Shown here: positions 45,647 through 52,262 of the stretch, piece after piece | How positions within the stretch are numbered: position 1 is the stretch's first letter | How the letters are laid out: each line of letters starts with the position of its first letter | Source of the DNA: Bacillus subtilis subsp. subtilis str. 168 | GTDB lineage: Bacteria > Bacillota > Bacilli > Bacillales > Bacillaceae | NCBI RefSeq assembly: GCF_000009045.1 | Contig: NC_000964.3 | Coordinates: forward strand, 2,728,001-2,792,000 | Direction of reading: 5' to 3' | Length of the DNA stretch: 64,000 nt | Notes under the pieces: generated by a model | Databases searched by the model: none | The model's input: the letters and a program-made list of their open reading frames with translations, nothing else | Told to the model about the DNA's origin: nothing | Position numbers and translations under genes: made by a program

Positions 45647-45855
45647 TCTTAAGGAATAAGAAAGAACAAAATGCCAAAAGCCTGAGTCGAAAATCAAAAA
45701 CAAGACTTTCAGACTATTTATTTTTAAAAACAAGGTAAAAAGAACTAAACTTTTGCCTCTGCATGCCGATATGAATAATAAGGCCGGCGCGATACTCCCT
45801 ATAACATCCTTTTCAGTAGATTTCATTATCGTGCCGGTTTTCTCATATGCAAAGC

Positions 45856-45884
45856 AATCCCGCCAATCAGATTGGCGGGATTTT
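45856..45884. terminator. Terminator between yrhK and cypB
   Basis: AATCCCGCCAAT/ATTGGCGGGATT. Confidence 0.8.
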
Positions 45885-45889
45885 ATATT

Positions 45890-49876: not shown

Positions 49877-50419
49877 TTATTTAACAGCCACAATACATAG
49901 ACAGGAAGCACGCCTGATAACAGAAAGATCCCTGAAATGCTGGTCTTTCAGCAGTTGAATATACGTTTTCTCTTTTTCACCGGTATTTGTGTCAATACTG
50001 ATATAAAACCGGCCGTCAATTTGAAGCACCCTGTAAATTTCTCTTAATGCAAGCCTAATATCGGTGCAGCTTTGAACCGTATGTAAAGAAAAGACTTTAT
50101 TAAAGGTACGGTCATCAAAGGGAATGTCCTCTGGATAGCCATGAAAAACCTCCCCGTTCCCCATGTTCTTTCGATTCGCACGTGATATCTGTCTTACCTT
50201 TCGTTTTGAAGGATCAATGCTTTTTAGGCTACCCTTTTTTAGTTTCTTGGTTATGCTTTTAAAGACAGTGCCGTTTCCAATTCCAATTTCTAAAATTCTG
50301 TCATTTTCTTGTATATCTATAGAGTCAATCATCATATGCTCAATTGTTTTGGTTAGCTTATATTTCCGAGAAAATAATTTCCAAAAATCCGATCGTTTAT
50401 AGAGTCTATTTTCTAGCAT
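49877..50419 (-). CDS. yrhH: Class I SAM-dependent methyltransferase
   Basis: ILEIGIGNG motif I; DIPFDDRTFNKV. Confidence 0.85.
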   Translation of the reverse strand: MLENRLYKRSDFWKLFSRKYKLTKTIEHMMIDSIDIQENDRILEIGIGNGTVFKSITKKLKKGSLKSIDPSKRKVRQISRANRKNMGNGEVFHGYPEDIPFDDRTFNKVFSLHTVQSCTDIRLALREIYRVLQIDGRFYISIDTNTGEKEKTYIQLLKDQHFRDLSVIRRASCLCIVAVK

Positions 50420-50513
50420 TTTAAACACCTGCTTTTGGTTTCCTATGTTTATTTATTATCTTAAAAAAATAAACATCATCTTCATTTCTAAAAGTGAAGG
50501 AAGGTACCAACTA

Positions 50514-50540
50514 GACGGCAATGTATTGAAAAATGTTTCA
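50514..50540 (-). promoter_or_regulatory. ECF (sigmaW/M/X/V-type) promoter of yrhH
   Basis: TGAAAC-N17-CGTC with a T-tract. Confidence 0.8.
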
Positions 50541-50577
50541 ATAGAACTAAACTTTTTCATTTTTTTCCGAAAAAAAA

Positions 50578-50600
50578 GCAGAAAACATAATGTTTTCTGC
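50578..50600 (-). terminator. Terminator ending the yrzI micro-protein cluster
   Basis: GCAGAAAACA/TGTTTTCTGC plus T8 on the minus strand. Confidence 0.75.
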
Positions 50601-50607
50601 CCTCTTT

Positions 50608-50766
50608 CTAATGCCAATGATAAGGGAATACATACAGCCTTTGCTGCTGCATTGCCATCAGCCTCTGCTGTCGGAATGGATTTCCATAACCATGTTTGAA
50701 GGAATGCGGCATGGACGCATAACCATGGCCAATCGACGGCAGTCTTTTTTGATAATCGTTCATCAT
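50608..50766 (-). CDS. 52-aa His/Gly/Tyr/Gln-rich micro-protein
   Basis: SD AGGTGA; MMNDYQKRLPSIGHGYASMPHSFKHGYGNPFRQQRLMAMQQQRLYVFPYHWH*; directly followed by a terminator. Confidence 0.55.
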   Translation of the reverse strand: MMNDYQKRLPSIGHGYASMPHSFKHGYGNPFRQQRLMAMQQQRLYVFPYHWH

Positions 50767-50835
50767 GCCATCACCTGCCTCACAATAACGTTGATTTACT
50801 ATATGCAGGCGCGCATTTTCTTGACAGCTATTTCG

Positions 50836-50889
50836 CTAAACTTGGTCCTTCTCCATTGTATAATGCATCAATAGTTCCATTCTAAGCAT
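50836..50889 (-). CDS. 17-aa micro-ORF in frame with the 52-aa ORF
   Basis: SD GAAGGGGGA; MLRMELLMHYTMEKDQV*. Confidence 0.35.
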   Translation of the reverse strand: MLRMELLMHYTMEKDQV

Positions 50890-50922
50890 ATGCCATTCCC
50901 CCTTCAGTTTTTTTCGTTGCTT

Positions 50923-51072
50923 TTAGCGCCAGTTTGTTAAATAAAGATGCTTTAACTGAGACTCTTTCATTTCATCATAAATTTGTTCAATCTGCTGTTC
51001 TCGTTCGAATTCTTCCAGGCTTTTAAACCGTTTTTTAATCGTTAACGTTAAAAAGAATAGGTTAATCGTCAT
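50923..51072 (-). CDS. yrzI: 49-aa YrzI-family small protein
   Basis: SD AAAGGGGGTGA; MTINLFFLTLTIKKRFKSLEEFEREQQIEQIYDEMKESQLKHLYLTNWR*. Confidence 0.88.
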   Translation of the reverse strand: MTINLFFLTLTIKKRFKSLEEFEREQQIEQIYDEMKESQLKHLYLTNWR

Positions 51073-51112
51073 ATCGCTCACCCCCTTTCAAAGTCCGCAT
51101 CAAGCGAAATAA

Positions 51113-51196
51113 CCCGCGGCACAACCCTTCTGCCGCGGGCAAATAAAAACCGCAGACAAAAGAAGACACCAATGCCTCTACTGCCTGCGGGGAGTT
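51113..51196 (-). terminator. Tandem leader hairpins (attenuator terminator plus a second stem)
   Basis: CCGCAGGCA...TGTCTGCGG plus TTTTTATTT (51190-51150); CCCGCGGCA/TGCCGCGGG perfect 9-bp stem (51139-51113). Confidence 0.75.
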
Positions 51197-51219
51197 GCGT
51201 ATGTCCGACTATTCCGAAT

Positions 51220-51336
51220 TTAATGCGTGCGATAAGCATCGGTTAAGGAAGGACACGAACTCTTCCACAGGCTGAATAAACCATGAACTTTTACATGTGT
51301 ATCACGTACAGGTTGACGTCGTTGTCTCATTGTCAT
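51220..51336 (-). CDS. 38-aa leader peptide upstream of yrzI
   Basis: SD AAAGGAGG; MTMRQRRQPVRDTHVKVHGLFSLWKSSCPSLTDAYRTH*. Confidence 0.65.
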   Translation of the reverse strand: MTMRQRRQPVRDTHVKVHGLFSLWKSSCPSLTDAYRTH

Positions 51337-51373
51337 TTTGGTTCAGCCTCCTTTGCTTTTTTCTTACTTTGTA

Positions 51374-51402
51374 AGTATATCCACCAAATTCCATTTTGTA
51401 AA
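51374..51402 (-). promoter_or_regulatory. SigA promoter of the yrzI leader
   Basis: TTTACA-17-TATACT. Confidence 0.75.
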
Positions 51403-51461
51403 CATCTTTTTCTAAAAATGGACGGAAATTGTGCAAATCATCGAATGGATTTGCCCGTTGG

Positions 51462-52262
51462 TCATGACACCTGCTTCATTTCTTTTCTGGAGCGGTCTTT
51501 CTTATGATATGCAATAAAATAAATGAGACCGACAAATACAGCTCCGCCGATGACATTACCGATAAAAGCCGGAATGATGTTTCCGATGAACTGCCCCCAC
51601 GTGAATGAGCCTGCAAAAATGGCAGCAGGAATCACAAACATGTTGGCGACAACGTGCTGAAATCCGATAGCCACAAAAGCCATGATTGGGAACCAGATGC
51701 CAAGGATTTTTCCTGCTGCGTCTTGGGCGCCGAAAGAAAGCCACACTGCAAGACATACAAGCCAGTTACAGCCGATGGCGGAAATGAGAACCTTGCCAAA
51801 GCTCATATCAAGCTTTCCTTGGGCAACGGCAATCGTTTTTTCTAAATAAGGACCTGTTTCAGTCAATCCAACCAAATGCCCGAAAAAGTAAGCAACAAAC
51901 AATGCGCCGATTAAGTTCATAATTGTGACGATTCCCCAGTTAATCGCTAACTCTTTTACTGATATTTTTCTCGAAAATAACGCCATCGCAACTGACATCA
52001 TATTGCCTGTGATCAGTTCAGCGCCAGCGAGAACGACAAGGATCAGGCCGACTGGAAATACTGCTGCACCAATCAAACTGGACAGGCTCCCCCATTCTTT
52101 CGGAAGATCGCCAATTACCCTGATATCAAGCAAATACCCAAGCGCGATAAATGCACCGCCTAAAAACCCCAGCACAAGCAGTGACGGCAGCGGGAGCTTT
52201 ATTTTTTTCATCCCTGCTTCAATTGCTGCTTCCGCTATTTCATCCGGTTTTCGAAAAGCCAT
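51462..52262 (-). CDS. yrhG: Formate/nitrite transporter (FNT) family channel
   Basis: FPVGL, GAELITGN, AIGCNWLVC and GFQHVVANM motifs. Confidence 0.95.
   Translation of the reverse strand: MAFRKPDEIAEAAIEAGMKKIKLPLPSLLVLGFLGGAFIALGYLLDIRVIGDLPKEWGSLSSLIGAAVFPVGLILVVLAGAELITGNMMSVAMALFSRKISVKELAINWGIVTIMNLIGALFVAYFFGHLVGLTETGPYLEKTIAVAQGKLDMSFGKVLISAIGCNWLVCLAVWLSFGAQDAAGKILGIWFPIMAFVAIGFQHVVANMFVIPAAIFAGSFTWGQFIGNIIPAFIGNVIGGAVFVGLIYFIAYHKKDRSRKEMKQVS

Follow-up and report, generated by a model that had tools for sequence, protein, structure and literature searches.

A candidate ribosome-dependent transcription attenuator in the leader of the yrzI (spyTA) toxin–antitoxin operon of Bacillus subtilis

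Described leader attenuators and the yrzI leader

Fusions and mutations have established that the bmrBCD operon of Bacillus subtilis is regulated by its bmrB leader (Reilman et al. 2014, PMC4191407). A sigmaA promoter repressed by AbrB is followed there by a translated leader open reading frame (ORF) with an overlapping anti-antiterminator, an antiterminator and a terminator. A slowed ribosome lets the antiterminator form, the operon is induced by chloramphenicol, and a small ORF cleaved by Rae1 lies downstream. A comparable ensemble can be recognised upstream of the small gene yrzI, in the stretch considered here, a window of 64,000 nucleotides (nt) of the B. subtilis subsp. subtilis str. 168 chromosome (NC_000964.3, positions 2,728,001 to 2,792,000). 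The yrzI leader, which contains the ORF S1027, also has an AbrB-repressed sigmaA promoter, a response to chloramphenicol and a Rae1-cleaved ORF downstream, whereas its switch between folds, with the overlapping anti-antiterminator and the effect of a slowed ribosome, is predicted only. Other differences concern the terminator, which lies inside the leader ORF in bmrB and 29 nt past the stop codon in the S1027 leader, where a second, weak terminator comes next, and the output, which is an ABC exporter in one case and a peptide toxin–antitoxin in the other. The two leaders are likened by their layout, not by sequence homology.

Other described systems share part of this layout. In the vmlR leader (Takada et al. 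2022, PMC9226507), the terminator is likewise stimulated by NusA and NusG, the Shine–Dalgarno (SD) region of the upstream ORF (uORF) lies in an anti-antiterminator helix, an alternative antiterminator exists, and the two leaders possibly also have in common an element sequestering the SD of the downstream gene. The vmlR uORF has 3 codons, however, and senses drugs that stall initiation, whereas S1027 has 38 codons and its ribosome must traverse the antiterminator arm. The Escherichia coli trpL leader provides the four-segment arrangement (A:B, B:C, C:D) in which the position of the ribosome in the leader ORF selects between antiterminator and terminator. In contrast to trpL, S1027 lacks regulatory codons, segment B lies wholly inside the ORF, and untranslated nascent RNA is expected from its folding to favour the antiterminator, not super-attenuation. 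The E. coli toiL/topAI-yjhQ system (Baniulyte & Wade, bioRxiv 10.1101/682021) has a uORF that senses several classes of ribosome-targeting antibiotics, and, as is proposed for S1027, gates a toxin–antitoxin and not a resistance gene. Its target is different, since toiL unmasks the topAI ribosome-binding site and relieves Rho-dependent termination, when S1027 would act on an intrinsic terminator that depends on NusA and NusG. The two sequences are unrelated and come from different phyla.

The locus is the yrhG–yrzI intergenic region, on the minus strand, within the cypB-fatR-yrhH-yrzI-yrhG-yrhF/yrhE region. Positions are given below in window coordinates (genome coordinate minus 2,728,000), on the minus strand unless otherwise stated; with this offset, three published Term-seq 3' ends of strain 168 match the hairpins of terminators T2, T3 and T4 exactly. 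The reading proposed here, to which a probability of about 0.55 is given, is that the 300-nt leader transcribed from promoter P3 is a ribosome-dependent transcription attenuator, which gates the spyTA (yrzI-S1025-S1024) operon as a ribosome-lag sensor of the bmrB type. The S1027 leader would then be an attenuator of the bmrB/vmlR kind, plausible though unproven, and not a new kind of module.

Leader anatomy and the competing folds at T2

The antiterminator proposed for this leader is a long stem-loop which holds the base of the first terminator, T2. The segment GCCUGUGGAAGAGUU (51272-51258) pairs with AACUCCCCGCAGGC (51196-51183) over 8 + 5 base pairs (bp), and the full helix, in which 51272-51247 faces 51215-51183, closes a 90-nt stem-loop of -32.8 kcal/mol (z = -4.0), with 1 of 200 shuffles folding as well. 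Its 5' arm (51247..51272, GCCUGUGG-AA-GAGUUCGU-GUCC-UUCC) corresponds to S1027 codons 22-30, and its 3' arm (51183..51215, GGAA..GGAC..ACG.AACUC.CCGCAGGC) ends with the 8 nt that form the base of the T2 5' arm. The S1027 stop codon sits in the apical part of the stem-loop. Only the outer 8 bp, GCCUGUGG (51272-51265) with CCGCAGGC (51190-51183), are mutually exclusive with T2, of which they sequester the stem base. A further helix is formed by segment A (AGGCUGAA, 51342..51349), which overlaps the 3' end of the S1027 SD, and segment B (UUCAGCCU, 51269..51276, codons 21-23), whose GCCU is common to the antiterminator 5' arm; A is a candidate anti-antiterminator arm. Two features of an attenuator are present in silico, namely an antiterminator exclusive with the terminator stem and its overlap by the leader ORF. 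With the translated SD-ORF and the partial terminator described below, which published mapping supports, the leader shows four features that define this class.

T2 itself (51141..51190) consists of a hairpin (51190-51150) followed by UUUUUAUUU, with a folding energy of -22.8 kcal/mol and z = -4.4. Its 3' end was mapped by Term-seq at genome position 2779143(-), that is 51143 in the window, with 47.8% termination in the wild type (Mandell et al. 2021, PMC8060035), although such percentages may be biased when upstream and downstream RNAs differ in stability. In the same data, NusA depletion brings termination at T2 to 0%, a second sheet, presumed to be that of the delta-nusG strain, gives 18.6%, and T2 is flagged "NusG-dependent" in supplementary file 4. 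The second terminator, T3 (51104..51139), has a hairpin at 51139-51113 followed by UUAUUUCGC (UUAUUU), a folding energy of -21.4 kcal/mol (z = -4.0) and a point of termination at 51106, where only 8.3% termination is reported in the wild type, compared with 95% at T4, the terminator of the whole operon (hairpin 50600-50578, end 50571; PMC8060035). Both T2 and T3 were missed by a simple terminator scan, because their loops are long and their U-tracts interrupted. On Northern blots, a S1027 probe detects RNAs of ~220 nt (P3-T2) and ~260 nt (P3-T3) beside the 0.8-kb read-through P3-T4 RNA (PMC12067863), and the coexistence of the three species is counted in favour of an attenuator. T2 is only half-efficient (48%) despite a strong hairpin and a good U-tract, when T4 reaches 95% with -11 kcal/mol. 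This weakness of T2 for its hairpin, together with its need for NusA and NusG, would fit a competing fold, a link that we infer. As a side observation, TTCTTT in the T2 3' arm (51164-51159) and TTATTT in its U-tract (51146-51141) each conform to TTNTTT, the motif of NusG pausing known from vmlR.

The folding analysis was thermodynamic, completed by a heuristic estimate of the refolding barrier. In nascent RNAs ending at 51181, 51172 or 51165, the antiterminator belongs to the minimum free energy (MFE) structure; in the complete leader, the MFE structure combines A:B, T2 and T3. Sequestration of the T2 5' arm by the upstream sequence exceeds that in all 100 dinucleotide shuffles. Once T2 is fully transcribed, the T2 state is favoured over the antiterminator state by 4.5 kcal/mol, and direct refolding has to cross a barrier of ~8.4 kcal/mol, which corresponds to ~0.1-1 s by an Arrhenius-type estimate assuming a standard attempt rate, and is comparable with a paused polymerase. 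Given this advantage of T2 and this barrier, the outcome should therefore be kinetic, on a time scale that pausing dependent on NusA and NusG could tip.

P3, from which this leader is transcribed, is a promoter of the sigmaA type (51374..51402), with a -35 box TTTACA (51402-51397), a 17-nt spacer and a -10 box TATACT (51379-51374). Such a match alone is not above chance in the region (4 found, 4.0 expected). It is kept in 40 of 41 orthologous yrzI loci, and the 5' end at P3 has been mapped by primer extension, with an AbrB site upstream and repression by AbrB (Gilet et al. 2025, PMC12067863). The transcription start site can be placed near 51368, from the 798-nt length of the P3-T4 RNA and the T4 end at 50571. 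The S1027 SD, AAAGGAGG (51347..51354), stands 10 nt before the ATG at 51336, and its GGAGG is invariant in both leader alignments (A1 and A2). The leader ORF S1027 (51220..51336, stop codon included in these coordinates) codes for 38 amino acids (aa), MTMRQRRQPVRDTHVKVHGLFSLWKSSCPSLTDAYRTH, and its translation is supported by ribosome profiling as cited in PMC12067863. At the very start of the transcript (51373-51360), and at the corresponding place in every locus, a mini-hairpin UAC-NNN(N)-GUA is conserved and an A-run comes after it (UUACAAAGUAAGAAAAAA here, UUACCACAGUAGGAAAAAA in the distant genera); the stem is fixed and the loop variable.

Much of this anatomy had been proposed in an earlier note, made from the letters of the stretch alone. 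The sigmaA promoter, the strong SD and the 38-aa ORF are all found where it placed them on the minus strand, and its GC-rich terminator with a U-tract at 51190-51142, for which it expected a 3' end at ~51142, is T2, both by folding and by the Term-seq point at 51143. The complementary segments that it quoted are correct base for base, and the pairing is longer than it described. The antiterminator that it considered to be mutually exclusive with the terminator does exist in silico, with an exclusivity restricted to the outer 8 bp. A hairpin is also present at its second 9-bp stem before the yrzI SD; this is the weak terminator T3 (8%), devoid of its own antiterminator.

How the two folds might be selected can be outlined as follows. 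RNA polymerase would start at the AbrB-repressed P3 and transcribe the translated ORF S1027. With RNA synthesised up to ~51183, the long stem-loop 51272-51183 would be preferred, its outer 8 bp holding the base of the T2 5' arm. A ribosome on codons 20-38, or at the stop codon inside the stem-loop, would block the outer helix; T2 could then fold and, with the help of NusA and NusG, transcription would end at 51143. The freed GCCU might be captured by the SD-proximal segment A, and the A:B helix would partly occlude the S1027 SD. If the pioneering ribosome lags or is absent, for example in the presence of chloramphenicol, the antiterminator would persist while the polymerase crosses the U-tract, the polymerase would pass T2 and the weak T3, and the toxin–antitoxin mRNA would be made. 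That the position of the ribosome chooses between the folds, and that this choice causes the induction by antibiotics, is plausible in the light of these models.

The A:B helix opens the way to another mechanism, of the ermC/vmlR style, in which A:B with T2 would be the default, an untranslated leader would terminate, and only ribosome arrest at or near the S1027 start, covering A, would free B to build the antiterminator. This looks unlikely, although the arrangement has some appeal: A:B is 100% paired in the B. subtilis group, with a compensatory pair, and is the sole helix kept, in a fully changed sequence, in both groups of leaders. It overlaps the SD as well as the GCCU that belongs to the antiterminator arm, it occurs together with T2 in the full-length MFE structure, and vmlR has exactly this succession of anti-antiterminator, antiterminator and terminator, with its uORF in the anti-antiterminator (PMC9226507). 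However, A:B shares only 4 nt with the antiterminator arm, and the MFE structure of the nascent RNA switches to the antiterminator without any ribosome. The mechanism would also need drug- or sequence-specific stalling, for instance at the +x+ motif of MRQRRQP, and not just a general slowing. The N-terminal peptide of S1027 changes from clade to clade, however, which speaks against an arrest peptide of specific sequence.

Control of T2 by a ligand- or protein-binding riboswitch, independent of the ribosome, is barely conceivable. The leader does look the part, being a long, conserved and structured 5' leader with a partial terminator, which is found among long 5' untranslated regions (UTRs) beside riboswitches in B. 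licheniformis. Yet no relevant Rfam 15 family matches 50300-51700, even up to E = 10 (best scores 11-23 bits, for thresholds of 38-170), the leader carries a conserved SD-ORF reported as translated, and its known inducers are translation inhibitors. The only Rfam match at gathering score in the whole window lies elsewhere, on the plus strand between yrhK and cypB: it is the Bacillus small RNA (sRNA) ncr1175 (45781-45886, 124.9 bits), also described in Irnov 2010.

Conservation of the leader across yrzI loci

The comparative set comes from a single YrzI scan, which gave 41 loci. The promoter is kept in 40 of them, and all 40 leaders show the same succession of an SD-ORF, two hairpin terminators and one or more yrzI copies. 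The SD-ORF, of 26-41 codons, is open in all 40 loci although its N-terminal half diverges and in-frame indels occur, and it stays open through the antiterminator arm in every one of them. The B. subtilis group was aligned over 20 species, with a subset of 15 covering the subtilis, amyloliquefaciens and atrophaeus clades. Within this group, the leader is best conserved in three segments, namely the antiterminator arms and the yrzI SD (0.94-0.97 identity). The block 51280-51241 is 97% identical across 15 species and 94% across 20, compared with 73% and 68% for the N-terminal half of the ORF, and the antiterminator 3' arm is 96% and 85% identical. In the 15 species, only 2 columns vary in 51277-51241, both with a change of amino acid, and the 12 codons over the arm show three amino-acid-changing and 0 synonymous changes. 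Moreover, a 1-nt deletion in B. changyiensis and a relative (L010, L011) causes the arm bases to be read in another frame. The constraint thus acts on the RNA, since no synonymous change is seen over the arm and conservation extends across a shifted frame.

The pairings were analysed with explicit structures and per-sequence folds, in place of RNAalifold on the 20-species alignment, which gave a muddled T2/T3 consensus because the arms of the licheniformis clade are shifted in the alignment. According to the per-sequence ensembles, the T2 base is held in the antiterminator with a probability of 1.0 in B. subtilis, B. atrophaeus, B. velezensis, B. glycinifermentans, B. sonorensis and B. swezeyi, a value reached by 0-1 of 100 shuffles, and these six species span the subtilis, amyloliquefaciens and licheniformis clades. 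In the 20-species alignment, the antiterminator is 87% paired, most pairs being invariant, and the A:B helix 100% paired, with one compensatory pair (CG in 10 species, UG in 6, UA in 4).

The high conservation of the block could also be explained if the 220-260-nt P3-T2/T3 RNA (ncr2184/ncr60) were itself the functional product, either acting in trans as an sRNA or coding for a functional S1027 peptide, the block then serving for target pairing or for the peptide. An abundant and discrete small RNA is indeed observed (Irnov 2010), it is listed in an Hfq-association study, and the leader peptide of the distant group is conserved at the amino-acid level, ending with ..SYxTIYSTKPVINF. In the B. 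subtilis group, however, the block is conserved in nucleotides and not as a peptide, it is exactly complementary to the adjacent T2 arm, and in none of the 40 loci does the leader occur apart from yrzI copies, which makes this explanation very unlikely.

Several points weigh against the attenuator reading. First, the model depends on kinetics, because T2 is thermodynamically favoured once complete. The Term-seq percentages carry the stability bias mentioned above, and the species of the group, being closely related, are not independent samples, which limits the weight of the conservation figures. Covariation in the antiterminator is scarce, with 3 of 24 pairs changed on both sides, and the pairing is weaker in leaders of the B. 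changyiensis type. In four leaders of the amyloliquefaciens clade (L012-L015; B. velezensis, B. siamensis, B. nakamurai and Bacillus sp. ISL-51), the T2 hairpin and the antiterminator are kept and the U-tract is lost (GCGG-AUUUAGUCUG). For T3, no antiterminator of its own was found in the B. subtilis folds, though this terminator is only 8% efficient. The distant leaders of B. timonensis, Fredinandcohnia and Litchfieldia have no antiterminator over the T2 base, its probability being at the level of shuffles, and their consensus consists of four independent hairpins, namely A:B, a stop-codon hairpin and two terminators with identical stems. Regarding the drug response, chloramphenicol could instead stabilise the yrzI mRNA, without any antitermination. 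Finally, control of read-through by S1027 translation or by the antiterminator is so far a prediction.

With regard to T3, a candidate anti-T3 formed by the T2 3' arm and the T3 5' arm was rejected, since it has 6 bp only in B. subtilis and T3 persists in the constrained fold; the question is moot, because Term-seq shows T3 to be only 8% efficient. In the amyloliquefaciens clade, T2 may not terminate, owing to the loss of its U-tract, and T3 (UUAUUUUCG) may be the working terminator. The earlier note had held that a lack of conservation of the pairing in orthologues would speak against it. The pairing is conserved within the B. subtilis group, and the switch does not extend to all leaders. Its interpretation of the leader as an attenuator stands as far as anatomy and logic are concerned, with a fold that is favoured in the nascent RNA and conserved in this group; the weak covariation and the absence of the pairing from the distant leaders detract from it.

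The leaders of the distant genera (L020-L041; B. timonensis, Fredinandcohnia, Litchfieldia) keep the layout of promoter, uORF and two terminators, with GGUCGAAUA:UAUUCGACC replacing the A:B helix. They encode a conserved peptide of 26-33 aa with the common ending given above, and a hairpin GUGAUUAAU:GUUAAUCAU, with the stop codon in its loop, adjoins T2. Their tandem terminator stems are identical (GCCACAGG/CCUGUGGC), and the conserved T2 loop UGGAAUAGU is complementary to the ORF segment CUAUUCGACC. An antiterminator based on such a B:C pairing to the T2 loop (CUAUUC-G-ACC with GGU-G-GAAUAG) was rejected, as it leaves the stem base uncovered, is not above shuffles and is compatible with a pseudoknot. 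The 3:4 and 2:5 alternatives of the identical stems still end in a terminator, and the idea that CCACAG in the 5' UTR mimics the terminator arm was rejected too, because this motif is not kept (CCTTTG, CCTGAG, CCATAG).

Some individual loci deserve mention. In two species (L030, L031), T2 and T3 are separated by ~140 nt of inserted sequence, which has hairpins itself and might be a small mobile or repeat element. Two others (L040, L041) are followed by two or three tandem yrzI paralogues after a single leader, in agreement with the multi-copy arrangement of B. cereus in PMC12067863. B. glycinifermentans has a second locus (L028:2050-2900) with a B. subtilis-like yrhG end, leader and yrzI, apparently decayed: the -35 box is TTCATA, the -10 box TATGCT, the SD AAAAGAGG and the first ATG has become ATT. 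An internal deletion affects the leader ORF, yrzI is short with a premature stop, and the sequence that follows bears no relation to the remainder of the spyTA operon. This second copy is probably a horizontally acquired remnant.

Drug response of the spyTA operon

Since 2004-2005, yrzI has served as a marker for the inhibition of protein synthesis, and it counts among the two founding substrates of Rae1, a ribosome-associated RNase. A yrzI–luciferase fusion is also listed as a reporter for protein-synthesis inhibition. The gene (spyT, 50923..51088) starts with a very strong SD, AAAGGGGGUGA (51088-51078), and its 49-aa ORF extends from the ATG at 51072 to 50923. The rest of the controlled operon (50568..50889) comprises S1025/spyA (50889-50836, 17 aa), which contains the Rae1 site, S1024 (50766-50608, 52 aa) and T4. 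YrzI is the toxic peptide SpyT, neutralised by the 17-aa S1025 (SpyA), inside which Rae1 cleaves, and both toxicity and ribosome protection have been shown for the R-T4 RNA (PMC12067863). No active promoter lies directly before yrzI (PMC12067863), so that expression of the gene must rely on read-through. The short leader RNA had been detected earlier as ncr2184 (Irnov et al. 2010).

Chloramphenicol below the minimum inhibitory concentration raises all yrzI-containing transcripts on Northern blots, including P1-T4, and does so independently of Rae1 (Deves et al. 2023, PMC10351889). According to Lin 2005, as cited in PMC10351889, the six mRNAs that chloramphenicol induces most include yrzI and bmrBCD, and the expression of yrzI correlates with that of bmrBCD at 0.7 (PMC10351889). 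The direction of regulation in the attenuator model agrees with this known induction, and the model would thus explain the rise of P1-T4 as well, since this transcript crosses the same terminators. That yrzI responds to translation inhibitors had been stated correctly in the earlier note, as both the chloramphenicol induction and the use as a reporter testify. In contrast, its description of the output as tiny proteins of unknown function, in a possibly undescribed module, has to be abandoned, because YrzI and S1025 are the published SpyT/SpyA toxin–antitoxin pair and P3, S1027, T2, T3 and the transcripts are published too.

The same data can be read without any regulated switch. S1027 would then be either a small gene or the tail of the yrhG transcript, and the two terminators after it would leak constitutively. 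Stabilisation of the mRNA by slowed or stalled ribosomes, or promoter effects, would account for the chloramphenicol induction, with the antiterminator fold as a by-product. Such a view finds support in the strong link between yrzI mRNA decay and translation, through Rae1 and through ribosome protection from RNase J1 and 3' exonucleases (PMC12067863), in the joint rise of all yrzI-containing species with chloramphenicol (PMC10351889), and in the P1 transcripts from yrhG, which likewise end at T2/T3 (PMC12067863). The distant leaders, which keep the uORF and two terminators without the antiterminator, and the weak covariation of the latter also fit. The induction of yrzI is, however, Rae1-independent, and no promoter of its own is in use. 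T2 is also unexpectedly inefficient for such a hairpin and U-tract. The antiterminator arms count among the three leader segments that are conserved best, lack synonymous variation and are kept whatever the frame. In other species, moreover, a separate terminator closes the upstream gene ahead of the P3 homologue, so that T2 and T3 are not simply the terminators of that gene. Taken together, leaky termination without a switch is a serious alternative, though a doubtful one.

In the published descriptions of the operon and of its chloramphenicol response, there is no mention of attenuation or of an antiterminator for yrzI, although the antibiotic Term-seq study of Dar 2016 possibly lists the leader. 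The literature examined gives no mechanism for the induction of yrzI by chloramphenicol, and neither S1027 start-codon or SD mutants nor the ratio of terminated to read-through RNA under drug were found in it. The parts, the operon function and the drug response being already known, the attenuator model alone appears to be new.

One more pairing concerns the yrzI SD. RNAalifold pairs the region of this SD (51085-51075, GGGGGUGAGCG) with the C-rich stretch just 5' of T2 (51199-51189, CGCAACUCCCC), which belongs to the antiterminator 3' arm, and in the licheniformis clade the change of the yrzI SD from GGGGG to GGAGG is partly matched by a change from CUCCCC to CUCCUCC. By analogy with SL-4 in vmlR, this pairing might silence the translation of leaky read-through RNAs; it might equally be a chance complementarity between an SD and a pyrimidine stretch.

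A broader picture can be put forward tentatively, as more doubtful than the attenuator itself. The S1027 leader may be a general sensor of ribosome lag, that is of transcription–translation uncoupling, and not a drug-specific arrest peptide, and it would free a toxin–antitoxin pair as translation capacity falls. Together with bmrBCD, it may represent a small common regulon design, with an AbrB-gated promoter, a leader-ORF attenuator and Rae1 clean-up of leaky read-through. The pairing of the C-rich stretch with the yrzI SD might add a second layer that silences leaky RNAs, and distant Bacillaceae may use a different switch on two identical tandem terminators.

If the attenuator reading is true, the S1027 leader supplies a mechanism for the induction of yrzI by chloramphenicol, and the half efficiency of T2 and its dependence on NusA and NusG are explained. 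The bmrBCD design (AbrB, leader attenuator, Rae1) would then have been reused for a peptide toxin–antitoxin and not a resistance gene, as a Gram-positive parallel to toiL-topAI of E. coli.

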